Part shown: piece after piece, positions 3,853 to 16,619 of the stretch
How the letters are laid out: every line of letters starts with the position of its first letter
Numbering within the stretch: the stretch's first letter is position 1
Notes under the pieces: model-generated
Seen by the model: only the letters and a program-made list of their open reading frames with translations
What the model was told of the DNA's origin: nothing
Databases searched by the model: none
Position numbers and translations under genes: made by a program
Source: Zygnema circumcarinatum SAG 698-1b
Taxonomy: Eukaryota; Plantae; Zygnematophyceae
Assembly: GCA_037447605.1 (NCBI GenBank)
Contig: CM074804.1
Span: 2,852,001 to 2,916,000, forward strand
DNA: 64,000 bases
Direction: 5' to 3'

Positions 3853-6800
3853 TTAGGGTTCTGGAAAGTGCTTGAGAAGAAACTCCCGAAGGTCCCGAAG
3901 CTCCCTCTGGCTGGCCTCATGGCTCATTCTGAAAGGAAAATAGCATACACACCATACATTCATGTGTCAGCAACAGCGTGTCTGCTCTCCCTCCCCCTTT
4001 TCCTCACTCTCTCAGCCTCTTCCCATCCCATCCCGCTTTTCCAATTCCACCCCCCTTCCTTTTAAATCTTCCTTTCCTCTTTTCTATGATCCCATTCTCT
4101 TGCTTTCCCTCGCCTCCTTTCGACCTCTTCATTTCTTCTACCTTCCACTTTCCCTTCTCCCTGCCCCCTCCCTCTCCCTCCCTTACCCACTTCTTCTTTT
4201 CATCTATCGTTCTCCTCCTCCCCCTCCAGCCGCTGTCCTACCAATCCCTACCTACCATGCACTCCATTCCTTTAGCAAAAAGAACAATCTAGCATGTCCT
4301 CTTTACCCACAGCCTTCCATCAAGCAACGGGTTGACACGATTTCCACTTGCTCTGAACCTCAAGTGCATAAAAGTTCAGCATTTGTTCTACAGAAGTTTA
4401 CTTATCTACATGAATCATACATTTTCTCTCACTTTTTGTTGCAAGACGAAAGAGAGAACCTTACCCCGGATAAGACTTGAACTCCAAGCTGGAAAATCCA
4501 AAATTCCGCAGCCTCTGTGCCGATAATTTTCCAAACATTTCGGGTACAAGCATGTCGTCTACCTCCTCATAGAATAACCAAATGCACTAAATCAGTTCAG
4601 TTAAATACTACAAGCTCTACGTTCATTCAGTTTGGGAAGAAAAAAGACTACATGGAAAATTCAGCAACTGAAAACCTTGAAAGACTGAAGCTAATGCGAT
4701 GATGTAAGGGAATCTCAAACGTTTGCAGAATCAACCTTTACTGCAGACGAGTGTCCTGCTGGAAGACATGCATAATAACGTGCCATTCATGTTCTCAGAT
4801 ACCGAAGAAGTGTCCTGTATGGCATTTTTCTGAAAGAAGGAAAAAACCCATGCAGTAGAAGGGTGCTTTTCTGCCCACCTGTCCCATGGCAGTGGAGGAC
4901 CGGAAGCCCCGCTGCTCGAGCTTCAACTTCACTGCCTGCTGGCATTGGGAGAGCTCTGCGGCAAAAAGTTATCGGGAAAAAGTGGTGAGGGAGAGGGAGA
5001 GGAAGGGGAAGAGGAAGAGAGAGAGGGACAGAGGGGAGACACGGGAAGGAGAGAGAGGGGAGTGGGGGGGATGGTGGCGAGGGGGGAGGGGAGAGCAAGG
5101 AAGATTCCGGGAGGGGCAGGGCGGGAGGGTGAGTGAGAATGTGTGGAGGGAGAGGAAGGGGCACAAAGCGTGGAAGGGAGGCAAGGAGGGAGGGAGGAGG
5201 AAGGGACAAAGAAAGTGAAGAAAAGAGAAAAAAACATGTGATTATACAGTCCCCATCCCGAGAACCCCAAATTGCAAAATTTCTTACATAACAACAGTTC
5301 CTGACATTAACCTCTTCACTTTATCAAGGAGGCTTTTCGGAGCTCCTTACTTTGCATTTGGCAGCCAGCCACTGAAACAGATCGCTGCAGAGAGGGGTGG
5401 AATCCCAGCAGTCTCCTTCCCATTGCTGAAACTCCCAACAGCTGTGCGGGAGGCGAGGTAGAGAGCGAGAGCCCCACCCTGGCTAAACCCTCCTACCGCA
5501 ACCTTCACGCCGGAGCTCTCTGCAAAAGTAAACCTATTTTTTTAAAGTTTTCAAGCCTTCACTATACGTTGTTTATGGCTTTCGAGGTTTCTTAGGACTG
5601 TAGGGGTCCTTAGGAGCCTTAAGAATTCGTTTAAGAATTACAAAGCTTTACTGCCTTTGGGGTATGACACCATCATGCACAACATAAAATGCGTGGAGCC
5701 CAAAATACAGTAAGCTTCAGCTGAGCCGTGTAAAACCAAACAAATAGAATAAAGCAAAAGTTACAAATTACATAATCGGAAATGTGTATGCATATATACA
5801 ATACCTGCATTCTCATATTCTGCCTTGAGCAGAGCCCCCACGTGTGCAGCAGCTCCATCAAGACCCTCCACATCTTCCGAGGCGTCAGGTGAAAGTCCTC
5901 GAATATCAAACCCTAAAACAAAAGGAACATCGAAAACGCTCATTACCAGAAGAACTCTTACATTCTAGACAAAATTCAGCTTGAATCGTGCAGCGCCTCA
6001 CACATTATCAACGCAACGTTGCCATTAACAGGTCAGGACTGGCCCTTCAGAACTTCTATTTTTCCTCAGCTTACAGGATGTCCCGGGATATCCGCCGTTC
6101 AGCGAAACTGGCTGAATTGGAGCCGAGGGGAGGACCCATTTTATCTGTTTCAATCATAATCAATGTAGAGAGAGAATTAGACTACTGCGTTGTTGTTGAT
6201 TAAAAGGGCTAAAGTCATACACTATCTTTCTCCCTCTTTCCCCCCTCTCCCTACATTCACCACCAGTAGAAAGCTGCTTCATCGAACACACGTACGACGA
6301 CGTAGAAACCCAGTTAAATATTACTGTACTGTACACAGAGAATCAATCTTTACTCTATGTTTGCATATTAGTTCAGGCAAAGCGATACACATCATGACTT
6401 GAGCAGAACTTTCAAAAAATGTCTGACGCAAGCAGAGAAGGCAGCATAGAAGAAGATAAAAGTGGAAACCAGCAAATCCTTTAGTAACTTCGTTTCTGCA
6501 GAAAGAAAGAGCCTCACATGAGGGAGATCCACCATCTCATCAATGTCCCCCCATCTGGCACCACCTTTTACTCCCGCAGCAGCATTATAGAAATTAATAA
6601 CAAGACAACAAATATAACTTGCCATAAAAAGGGAGAAAACGGTTTATTCTGCACTGCAGAATCGAGCTCTTGTACAATAGTTTAAAGCAACAAAGTGAGA
6701 AAGCAGTGGATGACATTTGTGCGCACCCTAAACCGGTATCCCCAAGCCCATGAAGCCACACTACTGTGACCGTGTGCTTCCCGGTGGCACGCTTATATAT

Positions 6801-7806
6801 TGTTGGCGCTGCAGGGGAAGCTGCATAAATAGAGAGAGAGGGAGAGGGGGAGAGATGGGGGGAGGGAGAGAGAGAGGGAGCGAAAGAGAGAGATAGTAGG
6901 AGAGAGAAGAAGAGAGAGGGAGAAAGAGAGAGGTAAGGAAGGACGGTGGGGGGAGAGAGGAGGAGAAGGAGAGAGAGAGGGAGCGAAAGGGAGAGATAGT
7001 GGGAGAGAGAGAAAGAAAGAGAGGGAGAGATAGAAAGAAAGAGAGAGCCGAGCACGAAACAAAGCATGATTAGTGACAAATTTGCATCACCAATGAATTG
7101 ATTCCCAGACACAGAAAGGACAATCGCCCTCGAATGTCTAGATGTTTGCAAATTCCTTTCGGAACACAATTGTAAGCGAATTTGCAGATTCCAGTTGAAC
7201 TTGTTCAAATCGTTTGCAAGATTCTTAAGAAAGCGTAGATTCAAAGGTCAAGAAGTTTTTAGTTCAAAAAGGTTTTTGCAGTCATAGACAGCGCACAAAC
7301 CTCTCCATGATCGGTCTAATGACTTACCGTCTTTTTTCTCTTTTAAACTGCAATTTCTACAAATGCACTGAAACCAGACCATGCCAAAGGCAACCTTTTG
7401 CATATCTTTTGAGTTTCTTGAACACACAGCATATGATCAACTCCTATGAAAAAAATCAAACATTATGCATTAACTCAAGAAATGTTTCCTTGTGAGAATC
7501 CCTCCAATCCATCCAATCTCTTCACAGCAACCTCCTCTGTAAAGCACCAATAAGCTCAGAGACTTTACCAAAAACTGCTGCCGTCGACATCTTACGGCTC
7601 CTGCTACTTTTAGGAGCAAAAACTTCGGGAACTTTTCTTCGAAGCCTCAACTCTAATCCTGAACCTGACGCTACACCTGCAATAGGCTTCGCTCGTAGAC
7701 CTTCCCTTGCAGATCCTTGCAGGAAACTGCAAACTTGGAAGTTTGCAACCTTGTGCAGGTGATGCAGACGCCCTACAGCTTGAGCCTGCATGCAGGGAGA
7801 CGCCAT
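3853..7806 (-). CDS. Acyl-protein thioesterase / lysophospholipase-like carboxylesterase (abhydrolase_2 family), 9 exons, with N-terminal transit-peptide-like extension
   Basis: Exons ~7806-7569, 6820-6727 (VVWLHGLGDTG), ~6554-6517, 6147-6075 (IKWVLPSAPIQPVSLNGG), 5912-5805 (FDIRGLSPDASEDVEGL), ~5519-5351 (VGGFSQGGALAL, nucleophile Ser), 4955-4879 (PVLHCHGT), 4562-4465 (VDDMLVP, Asp; EFKSYPG), 3928-3853 (MSHEA, His; TAA). The full Ser-Asp-His triad is present. Confidence 0.9.
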
Positions 7807-8872: not shown

Positions 8873-11557
8873 ATGGCTGACGCTGAGCGCGCTGCTGTGG
8901 GAAACGAATCCGTGCACCCCAAATCCGTGCACGGCGCCGCTCCGTTGGATCAGGAACGGAAACTGCTGCAAGGAATCCGGTACTCTCGGGGACGGCTGGA
9001 GCTTCTGGACCAGGTGACGCTGCTCGGCTTCAGCGCCGCGCTTTATGGAAACATCAATACCGTCTGGATTATCACCTTATTTTTTTATTAAGGTTTCCGT
9101 GCAAGCAGAAAGACCTTACCTTTGGCCTTTCTAAGATGTTAATTGTTGAGTTGGAAAAGGGGTTTAATCTGGGCATTCGATGCGATTCTGATATCCACAT
9201 GTGTGCCAGCATTGTAACGAAACGTGAATGTATGTGTGTGAGAGAATCAGGGAGGTGGCAAGAGAGCGGCAAAGGAGGGAGAAAAAGCAGGCTTGTAGAG
9301 AGAGAGAGAGATAGAGAGAGAGGGAGCGGGGGGGAGAGGGATGGAGGGATAGAAAGATATCAGTGTGAGGTAGAGAGAAAGTGGTAGAAACTCGAGAAAT
9401 CTCTTCAAAGTAATGGAGAGGATGAGTGTTCAAAGAGAAGTAGAAGAAGAAGAAGAAGAAGTTGATCGCATGTAAAGGATTGGACTTGGCATATGACGAT
9501 TGCCCTGCCCTTTTTGATTTAACCAATTACTTTGCTGACTAGCCTTTAGCTATTATTTTTTGCTCCCCCCCTTTTTTTTTCTTGCAGCGCAAACTTCCTC
9601 ACGAGAGCGTCTACATTGAAATTCCGGATGCGGAAACCGCATGGTGATCAAATCTGTTTAGTGTCTGCTCTCAAACTCTTGAAACCCTAATCCTAAACTT
9701 TCAGGCCTCATTCTGAATTTAAAACCCAAAATCGACCCTACCTTTGTTATTATATCCACTGTTATGCAATTCCTCAGCTGATCGGAAGTTCAATTTAATA
9801 TCAACTCACGTTTGGACATTATAAGTAAATTCTAAGTTTCAGCTGCAATAAATTGTGCCATGTTTGTGCACAGATTGATACTTAAATGAATTTTTCAAAA
9901 AAAAAAAGTGAATATTCAGCACATGAATAAACGAGAGTTAATAAACAAGTACTTTGAGACTGAATTAAAGACTTAATTTCATGTATAATTTACTTTGTGC
10001 TCCGCAGGCATGCCATAAAGGACATGGTGGTGCGAGGCGCTCCCGCCATCGCAATAGCGGCCGCGCTGGCACTGGCGGTGGAGGTGGTCAATAGGGAACC
10101 GTTCAGCACAACAGAAGCTGCACAGGAGCATATTCGGGAGAGGCTCGACTACTTGGTCACCAGGTATAGCAAAACTGAAATTAGAGCAGAGCGATCGAGA
10201 GAGGGATAGTGCGAGCGAGGGACCGGGAGGCAGGAAGAGAGAGAAGGGAGGTGGAGGGGGGCAGGTGGGGAGGTGGGGAGGTGGGGAGGGTGGAGGGGGG
10301 GAGCGGGGGGACGGGGGGGACGGGAAAGAGAGAGGGAGAGGGCGAGGGCGAGGATGGGTGAGGGGTGGGGAAGCCAAGGGACAAGAAGGGTAGGCGAAGG
10401 CATTGTACGTGGATGAAGAAGTACGGGAGGGAGAGTGAGAAAGGACGACAAGGGAGAGGCGGGAAGGAGGGGGTATATAAGTTGCAGTACTTCAATCTAT
10501 TTGTACCCAGTGTCCGCCCTTACTTCGTTTTCAGAATTGTAGTTGTCTCAGAACGTTCGGTCTCCTATCTTCAGCTTCATCCTCCATCCGGACCTTTGTT
10601 TCGCCCAAAAGGAGTCAAGAAGTGAGGAATAACATAAATATTTTTAGTTAATTTTCGCGTCGAGCTTTGTGATGAATCTTGCTTTCTCATGTGCAACCTT
10701 GGCCTTCCATGCCGTTAAATTTGCGCAGTCGCCCAACGGCCGTAAATCTTGCGGATGCAGCAAAGAAGCTGACGGAGGTGGTCAACAAGGCGGCGGCTGA
10801 GGAAGGGAAGCCGGACGGAGTTGTATATGTGAGGCTCTCTCCCACTCTCCCTGCCCCTCTCTCTCTCGCTCTCCCTTGCCCTCTCTCTTCCTCTCTCTCT
10901 CGCCGTATCTCCGAGGGCTGAGGGTTTAGGGTTCAATGTTTCGGGTTCAGGGTTTAGAGATCAGGGTTCATGCAAACACATGCAAATGAATCGGACTTCA
11001 ATCTTGCAATTCTGACAGTATACATGTAGAGTTTTGTTGAAAGTTGCCAAAGAAAGTGGATTTTTTTTGCTCCTATGTGGAGGAAATTTGTCCCAGAGCT
11101 TCACGCTTTTCTAGAAACCCTAAAAAGTGAAGGAACTACCACCAGTGTTGGAGAAATTGCCTATGCAAGCGGTTTTCGGAAAATGCCCAGATTTTGAAAC
11201 CTTAAAAACTTACAAACCAGTTCCAATTTCCAGTCAATGAAAAGTCAATGCCAAAAGTAGGCCGGAACTTTAGTGTATTAAAAAACCTTCTAGTAGATTG
11301 ATAGACCGGTGGAAAGATTGACAGGCTTTATTTCTTTAGACTTGTTGATAGATCAGAGAGAGTGCCAAGCACGCTACGATAATTAAACAAGTTGTTTTGT
11401 AGTTTTTAACTTCGCATTAATGGAGTTTGACAAATGAAGTTGAACTCACCAAAACTCACCAAACAATGTCAAGTCCCAAAGTCAATATCTGAGAGAGTTG
11501 AACATGCAACCCACTCAATTAACCCATACAATACAAGCTCAAACATCTCCCTCCCTT

Positions 11558-11589
<32 letters not shown>

Positions 11590-14500
11590 ACTCTCAAGCC
11601 ACAAAGATTTCTAACGACAATGTCCAGTTTGTGCTGCATTTTTTCTTGAATGTAGGCTTACGTCACCGCTGCAGAGGCCATGCTTGCTGCTGACGTGGCA
11701 TCCAATCGAGCCATTGGCGAGTACGGAGCCCGCGCCCTATTGGACGCTGCGCGGGCCGCGGGCGCGCGCCGGCTGACGGTGCTGACGCACTGCAACACGG
11801 GCAGGTGGGGGAGGGGGGCTATTGCGGCACTCAGCTTCAGTTTTCCTTGCAATTGCTTCAAAAATTCCTCCCTCTTTTTTCCATTTTTTTTGGCTAATTC
11901 TAAGGTCTGAGTAAGGAGTACGCATTCAAATCAGCTCAGAGAACTTTGCGTGATTATACTTAGAAATTTTATAAAGCTGGGAAGCAGCAGGACTATTTCT
12001 ATGCTACTGTGACATTATTTTTTCTTTTCTGAATCAGTTTGGCAACGGCTGCGTACGGAACGGCGCTGGGGGTCATACGAACACTGTTCTTTAACGGAGA
12101 CCTGGAAGCAGCTGTGTGCACGGAAACGCGTCCCTACAATCAGGTACTTCTTTCGTGAAGGAGGGAAAGCGAGAGAGAGGGGTGGGTAGAGAGAGAGGAG
12201 GAGATGCAGATTGAGAGGGAGGGGACGAGTGGAAAGACGAGGGTTGGAAGAGTGAGGGAGAGAGGGAGGGGAGAGGGATGATAATCGGTTTATACTAGGG
12301 ACGGAACAGAAAACAGTTATTCAACACATGAGCCTCCGATACTCTTATGAAGGCAGGCCTTCCGAGCCACCCTCTAGCAGCAAAAAAACCGCTATTGGTG
12401 TGCTGTCACTTCTGCTTTCTTCTCGTCTCAACTCTTCATCTGAGCTTTTCCACTATTCCCAAGGGACATGACCGAGAAGGCTGCCTATGCGAATCACAAA
12501 CACGTTCACACATACATAGTTATGTACTTACATACATACATACACATACATACATACGTTGGTGCATACACATACACATATACCTATGCATAGATGAATA
12601 CATATGTACATTTATGCATGTACGTCTGCACACATGCACACAGATTCATGCAGTGAGGGCATATGAATGTGTGCATATGTGCATGGTGCAGGGGTCCCGG
12701 CTGACGGCCTATGAGCTGGTGCACGACGGCATCCCCGCCACGCTCATCGCCGACTCCGCCGCCGCCTCGCTCGCAGCGAGGGGGGGAGTGCACGCAGTGG
12801 TGGTGGGAGCGGACAGAATCGCTGCCAACGGTCAGCTGCCCTCCTAGTCTGAGCGATCCACACGCATTACAGAGAGCGAGAGCGAACGAGGGAGGGAGAG
12901 GGAGAGAGGAAATGAGGGAGAGAGAGAGAGAGAGAGAGAAAGAGAGTGTGTGAGAGAGAGAGAGAGAGCGAGAGTTTCATTTGGAATCCTGAAACCCTAA
13001 AGAGCTGTGGTACAGGGGACACTGCGAACAAGATCGGTACCTACGCCTTGGCGCTGTCGGCCCACCACCACGGCGTGCCGTTCTTTGTGGCCGCTCCGCT
13101 GACCTCCGTTGACACGGAGATCGGAACTGGCAGCGCCATAGAGATCGAGGAGCGCGACCACCGCGAGCTGACCCACGCCTTGGGCGGCCACGGCCCGCGC
13201 GTGGCGCCGCACGGGATAGGAGTGTGGAACCCCTCCTTTGACGTCACGCCCGGCAGGCTCATCACGGGGATCATCACGGATAAGGTGAGAGAGGGAGGGG
13301 GAGGGGCAGGGGGAGGGAGGGCGGGGGACAAGGGAGGGGGAGGGAGAGAGTGGGGAGAGTGGGGGGAATGTTGGGAGGGCGGGGGAAAACGGGGGGAGGA
13401 GGGGCGTGGGGGCCGAGGTGGGGGGGGGGGAAGGGAGGAGGGACGGGGGAAGGGAGGAGGCAAGATAGGAGGGGGAGGGGAGAGAGGCGAGAGGGGTAGA
13501 GGAGGTGGAATGGAGGAAACGAAGGTAGGGGAGGAATTGAATGAGAACGGAGGGTTGAAAGGGGAAGACTATGGGAGGGTGGCAGAAGGAATTGAGGGAG
13601 AGGAAAAGAGAAGGATGGGCAAGAGGAGTTTCGCAAAGCGATACATTTATGCCTCTCTCTTCCCCCTTTTTTTTGGCAGGGCGTAATTACAAAAGCATCA
13701 GGAAAAAGCGAATTCGACATTCCTGCGTTCCTTGAACATTTGGAAAATCAGAACAAACTCAAAGGAATAGAGGAGGAAACTACCAATTCATTGCCGGTTT
13801 TAAACAAGGAGATCGCCGACAGCGGGGGGGAGGAGAAGATTGAGAGGGAGAGGAAGGCCCAGAAGGAGGAGTTGGTAAAGAGAGGATTTAAACCTTTATC
13901 TGTGGATGGGGTAGCTGCTTATTTAAGTCAACTTCCAGAGCTTGCGGAGAAATTGGGAGGAACAAGTAATGAATGGAGTGTTCGTGAAGTGGGAGACGGG
14001 AATTTAAATTTTGTTTACATCGTGGAAGGAACCAAGGGTTCGCTCGTATTGAAGCAGGTGAGGCAAACAACCATTCGAGCTAAGTTTTGCTTTGTGTTTT
14101 TCGTCTTAAAATTAGCTCTTAATTCTTTGTTTTGAAGAGTATGGAGGAGAGTTTCTAAGGTGCGAGGTTTTGGGGATCTTGGAGTTTTCTGGGTTTTGTA
14201 GGTTTACTTTGTGGCAGTCTTGTTAATGCTTTTATTTCAAGTCACTCCTAGTGGTTTTGCGTCCTTGAAAATGTTCAAGTGCTGACATACCCCCTTGGTC
14301 TCTCTCTTGTTCCCTCTCTCTCTCCCATCTTCATTCACACCCTTCTCTTCTGTTGCTGAACATCTCCCTTCCCCACCTCTTTCTCTCCCTTGTCTCTTCC
14401 TCCTTCAACCTCCCTCGTCCCTCTTCCTTCCTATTCTCTCGCTCTCCTCTTCATTGCTGCCTCCCTGTGCTCCCCCTACCCCTCCCCCTTCCCCTCCCCG

Positions 14501-16619
14501 TCCCCACCCCTGTCTCCCCTTCCCCCTCCCCCCTCCCCCCTCCCCCTCCCCCCCCCCCCACTACCAGGCCCTCCCCTACATCCGCTGCATCGGCGAGTCC
14601 TGGCCCATGACTTTAGAGCGAGCCTACTTTGAGGCGAGCGTCCTCAAGGAACACGGCCGCCTTGCGCCCTCCCATACGCCGCAGCTGCTGCTGTTCGACC
14701 GGCCCATGGCCCTCCTCGCCATGCAGTATTTGGCCCCCCCTCACATCATCCTCAGAAAGGGCCTCATAGCGGCCGTACAGTACCCTCTTCTGGCGGATCA
14801 CATTTCGACTTACCTCGCCAACACTCTCTTCTACACATCGCTTCTGTTTTTGTCGACTACGGAGCATAAAGCTGCAGGTAGGTCTAAAGGCCCCAAAACA
14901 AAGTGTTTGGGTGTTTGGTTTGTTTTCAGTCTTTGGTTGTCGGTAACATGTTCAAGTGGCAACATGTTGTCATGTGTCATGTTGCTTAACTCTTGTTGGC
15001 TACTAACACCGCTGTGTTCTGTTCTGATCCGTTCCGTTCTGTTCCGTTCCGTTCTGTTCCGTTCCGTTCTGACCCGTTCCGTCTCCGTTGAACAGTTGCG
15101 AAATACGCCGGCAACGTGGAAATGTGCCGTTTAACGGAGCAGGTGGTGTTCACGGAACCGTACTGTACGGCCGCCAACAACCGGTGGACCTCCCCGCAGC
15201 TCGACGGCCACGTGGCGGCCCTCCGCAGCGACCCGGACCTCGTGGTCGCCCTCGCGCCCCTCAAGGCCAAGTGAGTGAGGGCTAGGGTTTGCAGGGAGCA
15301 GGAGGGTGAGGGAGACAGAGTGAGTGTGGGAGAGGGAGAGAGAGAGAGAGTGGGAGAGAGGCAGAAGGGGCGGGGGAGGGGGAGAGGGAGAGCAGAGGCG
15401 GAATTTCAGGAAATGGGTATAGTAATACAAGGGGCTCTTGGAGCGCTTAGGTATTTAGGCTTATTATAGGAGGCGTATGGGAATGGAACGGACTGTGAAA
15501 CATTTTGGGTTATTTTTTTCTGCCCTTTTGATGGGAGCGCAGATTCTGTGAGAGGGCTCAGGCGCTGATCCATGGCGACCTCCACACGGGCTCCGTTATG
15601 GTAACGGAACAGAGCACATATGTCATCGATCCCGAGTTCGGGTTCTATGGGCCCATGGCCTTCGATATAGGAGCGTTTTTGGCCAACTTATTTTTGGCCT
15701 ATTTTAGCCAAAATGGCCACAGCAAAAAACCCGGCGACCGCGATGTGAGCTCTCCCTCTCTCTCTCCCTTCCCCTCTCTCTCGTTTTTTCCCCTTCCCTC
15801 TCCCTCCCACCCTCTCAAGCCTCACCTTCCTGGTCCGGAAAACTTAACTGATGGGCGATATTGTGGTTTCTTGACATTGTTCAACTGCGTTTTCCTGGGT
15901 ATTTATTTTGAGTTTATCCGGTCGTTGTGGCGGGAGTGTTCAGACCTACAAGGAATGGATCCTGAAGACAATAGTGGAGACCTGGGAGCTGTTTTCTGCC
16001 AAGTTTGTGGCTCTGTGGGAGAAGCATGCGGGAGAGGGAGAGGGAGAGGGAGAGGGAGAGGGAGAGGGAGAGAGAGGGGTGGGAGACGCATACCCCGCAG
16101 CGCTCTACCCCTCTCCGGGGGTTCGCAGACCAGCGCAAGAGGCCTTCCTGGCGGAGCTCTTCGCCGACTCGCTCGGATTCGCGGCGGCAAAGATGATTCG
16201 GTAAGGCAACTCTCCTTTAAGGTAACCCTAAAAAGTTACCAAATGGCACCAAGAACCCTAACAAGCGAGAGGGGGACCATAACCCCTTTACACATAAGTC
16301 CCGGCGTAACCTTAGGAATCGGAAGTCTTAGTGCTCTTGAAACCCTAGAAGTGAAGAGAATGTTACTGGTTCCGTGCGGATAACGTGCGTGTTCGAGTAA
16401 CTGGTCACGGAAACTGCAACTGAACTCATGTAACTTGCTTGCAGGCGGATTGTTGGAATCGCCCACGTGGAGGACTTGGAGAGCATCGCGGACCCGGACA
16501 TTCGGGCGAAGTGTGAAGGGAGGGCCCTCGCCTTCGCCCGCCGGATGATGAAGGAGAGGGCGGGGCTCTATGCCGCCGTGGCTGCCGTCGTGGCGGACCT
16601 CAGAGCTGCGGACCGTTAA
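8873..16619 (+). CDS. MTI1-MTK1: Bifunctional methylthioribose-1-phosphate isomerase / methylthioribose kinase fusion (methionine salvage, Yang cycle), ~870 aa
   Basis: 14 phase-consistent exons: 8873-9013, 9588-9643, 10008-10163, 10729-10828, 11656-11804, 12038-12143, 12692-12830, 13016-13284, 13680-14057, 14568-14877, 15096-15270, 15543-15744, 15944-16200, 16445-16619 (2613 nt). MTI motifs: [75 protein letters not shown] motifs: [58 protein letters not shown]. Confidence 0.93.

Follow-up and report, generated by a model that had tools for sequence, protein, structure and literature searches.

A fused methylthioribose-1-phosphate isomerase and methylthioribose kinase gene (mtnAK) in Zygnema circumcarinatum, a probable algal copy of an old fusion apparently split in seed plants

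The window analysed here is a stretch of 64,000 nucleotides from Zygnema circumcarinatum SAG 698-1b (contig CM074804.1 of assembly GCA_037447605.1, positions 2,852,001 to 2,916,000 of the forward strand), and all coordinates below refer to it. At 8873-16619 on the plus strand it holds a gene, here called mtnAK, in which 5-methylthioribose-1-phosphate (MTR-1-P) isomerase (MTI) and 5-methylthioribose kinase (MTK) are joined in one reading frame. With a probability of about 0.88, the gene is an ordinary algal copy of an ancient eukaryotic mtnAK, encoding two separately folding salvage enzymes on a flexible linker, with a fusion that pre-dates the chlorophyte-streptophyte split and was cut in seed plants. 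A single polypeptide would thus bear two Yang cycle (methionine salvage) enzymes: the kinase at the C-terminus would convert 5-methylthioribose and ATP to MTR-1-P, which the N-terminal isomerase would turn into methylthioribulose-1-P, and the variable linker would serve as a tether providing 1:1 co-expression and closeness, probably without a closed tunnel. The fusion would have been passed down via algae, bryophytes, lycophytes and ferns; in seed plants a cut within the junction exon would then have produced the two genes known in Arabidopsis as MTI1 and MTK1. The strong evidence for the fused model is comparative, namely the introns that it shares with Selaginella and the presence of the fusion in many relatives.

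The joined exon model comprises 14 exons with a total of 2613 nt, corresponding to 870 aa and a TAA stop codon without any internal stop, and all 13 introns (185-827 nt) have GT-AG borders. The original prediction of 14 exons with phase-consistent introns and about 870 aa was thereby confirmed. Re-reading of exon 9 (13680-14057) and the matches to TIGR00512 and TIGR01767 also bore out its description as a single stop-free frame, which leads from the MTI tail (GVITK...FDIPAFL) through a charged linker to the kinase start FKPL at 13887 and the Gly loop GDGNLN. The same holds for the claim that the kinase has no start codon of its own ahead of the Gly loop: exon 9 contains no in-frame ATG (those at 13906, 13969 and 13973 are all out of frame), and the sole in-frame ATG of intron 8 (13368) runs into stop codons ahead of exon 9. 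The stop-free linker by itself is weak evidence for a fusion; 7.6% of shuffled linkers were likewise free of stops. When the model protein was compared with the whole window, no second MTI or MTK copy was found there. Sequence words of 12692-16619, 48% of which is exon, were present at 0.40-0.57 in seven sequencing runs of one organism, which fits expression and spliced RNA, the joint itself not being shown by word counts.

Profile and database searches were run exon by exon, natural full-length relatives were used as queries for the fusion, and the joined 870-aa model was used in local comparisons only. The NCBIfam mtnA model TIGR00512 matched exons 3, 5, 7 and 8, on each of which it was the best family ahead of eIF2B or R15P isomerase (IF-2B family), and the match on exon 8 reached position 330 of 335. 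The NCBIfam MTRK model TIGR01767 aligns from residue 70 of exon 9, which matches its position 1, as far as exon 14, where position 390 of 401 is reached. Among solved structures, exon 8 was closest to human MRI1 (4ldq), and exons 9 and 10 to Arabidopsis MTK (2pyw). A homology search with exon 9 yielded 7 short matches under the length filter applied. We take C197 and D277 of the isomerase half to be the catalytic Cys and Asp, carrying over a role that is published for the R15Pi relative. The motifs VRGAPAI, SRPTAVN, HCNTG, RPYNQG, GADR and ANKIG of MTI are all found, as are the five motifs described for Arabidopsis MTK, i.e. G-loop (GXGNXN), W-loop, HGD, DXE (IDXEF) and RR (PMC2194712), which lie at positions 477, 510, 670, 688 and 813. 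Of the columns that are invariant in an alignment of 91 fused relatives, the Zygnema protein retains 92 of 93, and of the nearly invariant ones 119 of 122. Because all motifs and nearly all invariant columns are kept, both halves look active, and the proposed bifunctional MTI-MTK enzyme is supported by its domains and motifs. MTK forms MTR-1-P and MTI isomerises it (PMC7820975).

The consecutive order of these two steps, together with a fusion and domain order conserved from green plants to ochrophytes and a ciliate, speaks for a tighter coupling in which MTR-1-P would be channelled from kinase to isomerase via a fixed interface, perhaps only in a dimer or higher assembly; this would also explain the long retention of the fusion. 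The original prediction had raised channelling as a possibility, and no support for it emerged. The distance between the MTI end motif and the kinase Gly loop ranges from 59 to 129 residues (Zygnema 109, median 84), and column conservation in the linker is 0.25 vs 0.68 and 0.63 in the domains. In the AlphaFold monomer model of the Selaginella fusion (mean predicted local distance difference test score, pLDDT, 92.8; predicted template modelling score, pTM, 0.61) the halves superpose on Arabidopsis MTK 2pyw (root mean square deviation 0.9) and on human MRI1 4ldq, whereas the linker stays under a pLDDT of 50 and no confident domain orientation is predicted. Moreover, angiosperms and conifers get by with stand-alone MTI. 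With a linker that differs in both length and sequence among relatives, and with no fixed interface predicted between the domains, channelling by mtnAK is unsupported, and the model is best read as two independent enzymes held together by a flexible tether, which would give co-expression and proximity. MTI is a homodimer. MTK is a homodimer as well (PMC2194712). Channelling is regarded as unlikely, and is still given a small share of the probability because an interface formed in an oligomer would not show in a monomer model.

All 13 introns of Zygnema mtnAK match those of the fused Selaginella gene in protein position and phase. The first eight are common with Arabidopsis MTI1 (8/8) and the last five with Turnera MTK (5/5); the mapping of introns is incomplete for Closterium, Chlorella and the second Turnera copy. 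In a second species (L001) the junction exon is alike and is preceded directly by the same intron. The gene of Marchantia polymorpha is a single intronless ORF of 817 aa (L085:1001-3454) with 0/13 of the introns common to Zygnema and Selaginella, and the lack of all 13 suggests a replacement by a retrocopy. These comparisons bear on the reading that two adjoining Zygnema genes, MTI followed by MTK, have been misread as one. The model over the junction is predicted from sequence, and the frequency of stop-free shuffled linkers leaves some room for such an error; it is nevertheless very improbable, as the kinase lacks a usable start codon, Selaginella has the same junction exon with its flanking introns, L001 has the same upstream intron, the Marchantia fusion is intronless, and Netrium provides complete transcriptome ORFs of the fused form.

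The distribution of the fused form was searched with the Adiantum fusion as query, targets being scored as proteins with IF-2B and APH domains. Fusions were found in ferns and lycophytes (Adiantum, Ceratopteris, Selaginella, Diphasiastrum), in bryophytes (the moss Ceratodon; Marchantia, Riccia, Calypogeia) and in algae, many of them chlorophytes (Closterium, Chara, Chlorella, Volvox, Trebouxia, Coccomyxa, Chloropicon, Bryopsis), and further fusions in Chlorokybus and Prasinococcus. Transcriptome ORFs with the fusion came from Psilotum, Pteridium and the close relative Netrium, genome models from Ginkgo and Spirogloea, and ochrophyte fusions from Tribonema and Chrysoparadoxa. MTI precedes MTK in 128/128 fetched two-domain proteins, and every match from a non-seed green plant is fused in this order. 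The best 120 matches of a search with the MTI half were stand-alone MTIs, and the named ones all belong to seed plants (Cryptomeria, Araucaria, a partial Taxus sequence, Welwitschia and angiosperms). As this set is limited by score, further stand-alone MTI copies in non-seed plants are possible. Judged from these sequences, algae, mosses, ferns and Ginkgo normally carry mtnAK in its fused form, and it is flowering plants and conifers, with their split genes, that depart from the rule. Metagenomes yielded no conifer MTK, their two plant-like matches grouping with angiosperms, and the sampling of fused and split forms is without cycads, Amborella and conifer MTK. Two proteins of about 800 aa from Musa (P0163) and Turnera (P0169, L088) consist of two MTK copies in tandem and are probably tandem genes merged by annotation.

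Separate trees were calculated for each domain; the large MTI and MTK trees are quick trees with SH-aLRT (Shimodaira-Hasegawa-like approximate likelihood ratio test) support only, while a 34-row MTI tree was computed carefully. The Tetrahymena protein stands outside the trees, so that the result on common descent covers green plants. Both Zygnema domains are placed amid fused zygnematophyte and charophyte sequences, as expected of a zygnematophyte gene; modest support places the MTI domain next to Closterium and the MTK domain next to Netrium. The ochrophyte fusions fall within the same eukaryotic MTK clade (SH-aLRT 93). In both trees the stand-alone MTI and MTK of seed plants nest amid fused streptophyte sequences. 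Shared introns and tree nesting argue that Zygnema mtnAK is inherited vertically, and of the two origins offered by the original prediction, an ancestral green-lineage state or an independent fusion, the former was borne out by distribution, introns and per-domain trees. A separate fusion of MTI and MTK genes in this algal lineage, for which no support was found and which is conceivable in principle because the two genes are neighbours in bacteria, with either mtnA or mtnK coming first, is highly implausible given the uniform order of the non-seed green plant fusions, the tree position of both domains and the introns common with the Selaginella fusion.

Among the bacterial loci fetched (the best 80 of >594 matches) no fused ORF was present; mtnK precedes mtnA in 14 loci and mtnA precedes mtnK in two from Chloroflexota, as separate ORFs. 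In the latter (L002, L003) mtnA is directly followed by mtnK in the same frame, which is the order of the eukaryotic fusion; by identity, other sequences are closer to the eukaryotic domains. A different salvage fusion was seen in two metagenomic, probably bacterial proteins, P0021 (657 aa, from a cluster of 11 members) and P0034 (606 aa), in which the enolase-phosphatase MtnC (TIGR01691) is N-terminal to MtnK.

The original prediction had placed a later split in land plants. The fusion persists in liverworts, a moss, lycophytes, ferns and the Ginkgo model, and in the sampled green plants stand-alone forms are confined to seed plants, so that the split is not a land-plant event; according to the available sequences it took place in seed plants. 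The fission point lies inside the linker, because stand-alone MTIs end shortly after FDI and angiosperm MTKs start at F-x-P-L. Two conifer-like MTI transcripts showed no MTK remnant at their 3' ends, nor was one detected in the sequence up to 3 kb from Arabidopsis MTI1. In the 34-row tree the fused MTI of Ginkgo, whose linker length is typical for land-plant fusions, groups with the stand-alone MTIs of gymnosperms (100/98) and apart from angiosperms (100/100), and one clade of all stand-alone MTIs was rejected (approximately unbiased test, p-AU 0.0046). If the Ginkgo model is right, two fissions are the simplest reading of this grouping and rejection. We lean slightly towards independent cuts within the junction exon in two lineages, the angiosperms and the conifers with gnetophytes, with the fusion kept in Ginkgo, as represented by one gene model at locus Gb_28479.

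Several points weigh against the view of mtnAK as an inherited fusion of two separately folding enzymes. Splicing over the junction in Z. circumcarinatum is a deduction from sequence, the deep branches of the large quick trees are weak, and a domain interface may be formed in the oligomer, contacts made in dimers being beyond the reach of a monomer prediction.

The exons of the gene are listed in Table 1. At about 16030-16075 in exon 13 an in-frame GAGGGA microsatellite puts a Gly-Glu run into a kinase loop, and no such run occurs there in the relatives checked. Intron 7 carries a GA repeat at 12891-12930. Upstream of mtnAK a divergent neighbour at about 4800-7000 on the minus strand shows exons with VVWLHGLGDTG and LPVLHCHG; we take it to be an acyl-protein thioesterase or carboxylesterase-like gene unrelated to methionine salvage.

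Table 1. Exons of the Zygnema circumcarinatum mtnAK gene in window coordinates
Feature	Position	Strand	Content
Exon 1	8873..9013	+	ATG start; MTI N-terminus, aa 1-47; phase 0 intron between LLDQ and R, common to Selaginella, Closterium and Arabidopsis MTI1
Exon 2	9588..9643	+	MTI
Exon 3	10008..10163	+	MTI; VRGAPAI motif
Exon 4	10729..10828	+	MTI; SRPTAVN motif
Exon 5	11656..11804	+	MTI; HCNTG with family catalytic Cys, C197
Exon 6	12038..12143	+	MTI; TRPYNQ
Exon 7	12692..12830	+	MTI; GADR with family catalytic Asp, D277
Exon 8	13016..13284	+	MTI; ANKIG ... GIITDK; TIGR00512 positions 245-330, E 1.8e-36; best PDB match human MRI1 4ldq
Exon 9, junction exon	13680..14057	+	MTI C-terminal strand and helix; charged linker of ~48 aa (about 13743-13886); MTK N-terminus from 13887; Gly loop GDGNLN, aa 477-482
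Exon 10	14568..14877	+	MTK; W-loop, W510; Arabidopsis MTK 2pyw, E 3.3e-46
Exon 11	15096..15270	+	MTK
Exon 12	15543..15744	+	MTK; HGD catalytic loop, aa 670-672; IDPEF Mg-binding motif, aa 688-692
Exon 13	15944..16200	+	MTK; in-frame GAGGGA repeat read as Gly-Glu run
Exon 14	16445..16619	+	MTK; RR motif R813-R814 spanning the exon 13/14 joint; TAA stop

The Zygnema gene is not a novel kind of gene, as it is a further member of the mtnAK fusion published in 2009. The name was given to an MtnA-MtnK fusion of Tetrahymena thermophila (XP_001031773, 779 aa), for which one cDNA spans both ends (Salim et al. 2009, PMC2759508); the original prediction had cited this ciliate fusion correctly. The same paper reports mtnAK in Ostreococcus tauri, two Micromonas genomes and Phaeodactylum, does not cover streptophyte algae and land plants by name, and leaves the phylogeny of mtnAK open. 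The fusion was mentioned again in a 2018 review (PMC6302742), and public chlorophyte records already carry its annotation. Prior documentation in green algae, which the original prediction had named as lowering the novelty of the gene, is thus provided by the 2009 paper and these annotations. No paper on the retention of mtnAK in non-seed land plants or on its fission in seed plants was found in a partial coverage of the literature, and the seed-plant fission, possibly as two events, is the sole part of this work that may be new.

The gene itself is ordinary, the fusion being present in many public proteomes, and its evolutionary by-product is of modest value. The view of the Yang cycle that is centred on Arabidopsis would be reversed, with the fused form as the ancestral state and the split form as derived in seed plants; if this is true, the separate MTI1 and MTK1 genes of textbooks represent a derived state. 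For annotation it serves as a warning that non-seed plants hold both activities in one gene, which is often named for one half only. Two fissions, if true, would offer a natural experiment, replicated and datable, on what makes a metabolic fusion persist or break up, and the intronless Marchantia copy eases work on the activity of the halves, on channelling and on the cost of splitting.

Among known systems, Tetrahymena mtnAK has the identical two domains in identical order (MtnA N-terminal, MtnK C-terminal) and covers the identical pathway steps, whereas the Zygnema gene is a streptophyte copy that encodes 870 aa, has a longer linker and contains 13 introns. Bacterial mtnA and mtnK (TIGR00512, TIGR01767) belong to the same enzyme families and are often adjoining genes, yet remain unfused in the loci described above. 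Arabidopsis MTI1 and angiosperm MTK1 (2pyw) are orthologous to the two halves of Zygnema mtnAK, whose kinase half has all MTK motifs. The last exon of Arabidopsis MTI1 corresponds to the 5' part of the mtnAK junction exon and ends a few residues past FDI, and angiosperm MTK begins, as does the Zygnema kinase half, at the F-x-P-L motif; unlike Zygnema mtnAK, they are two genes and are free of the linker.

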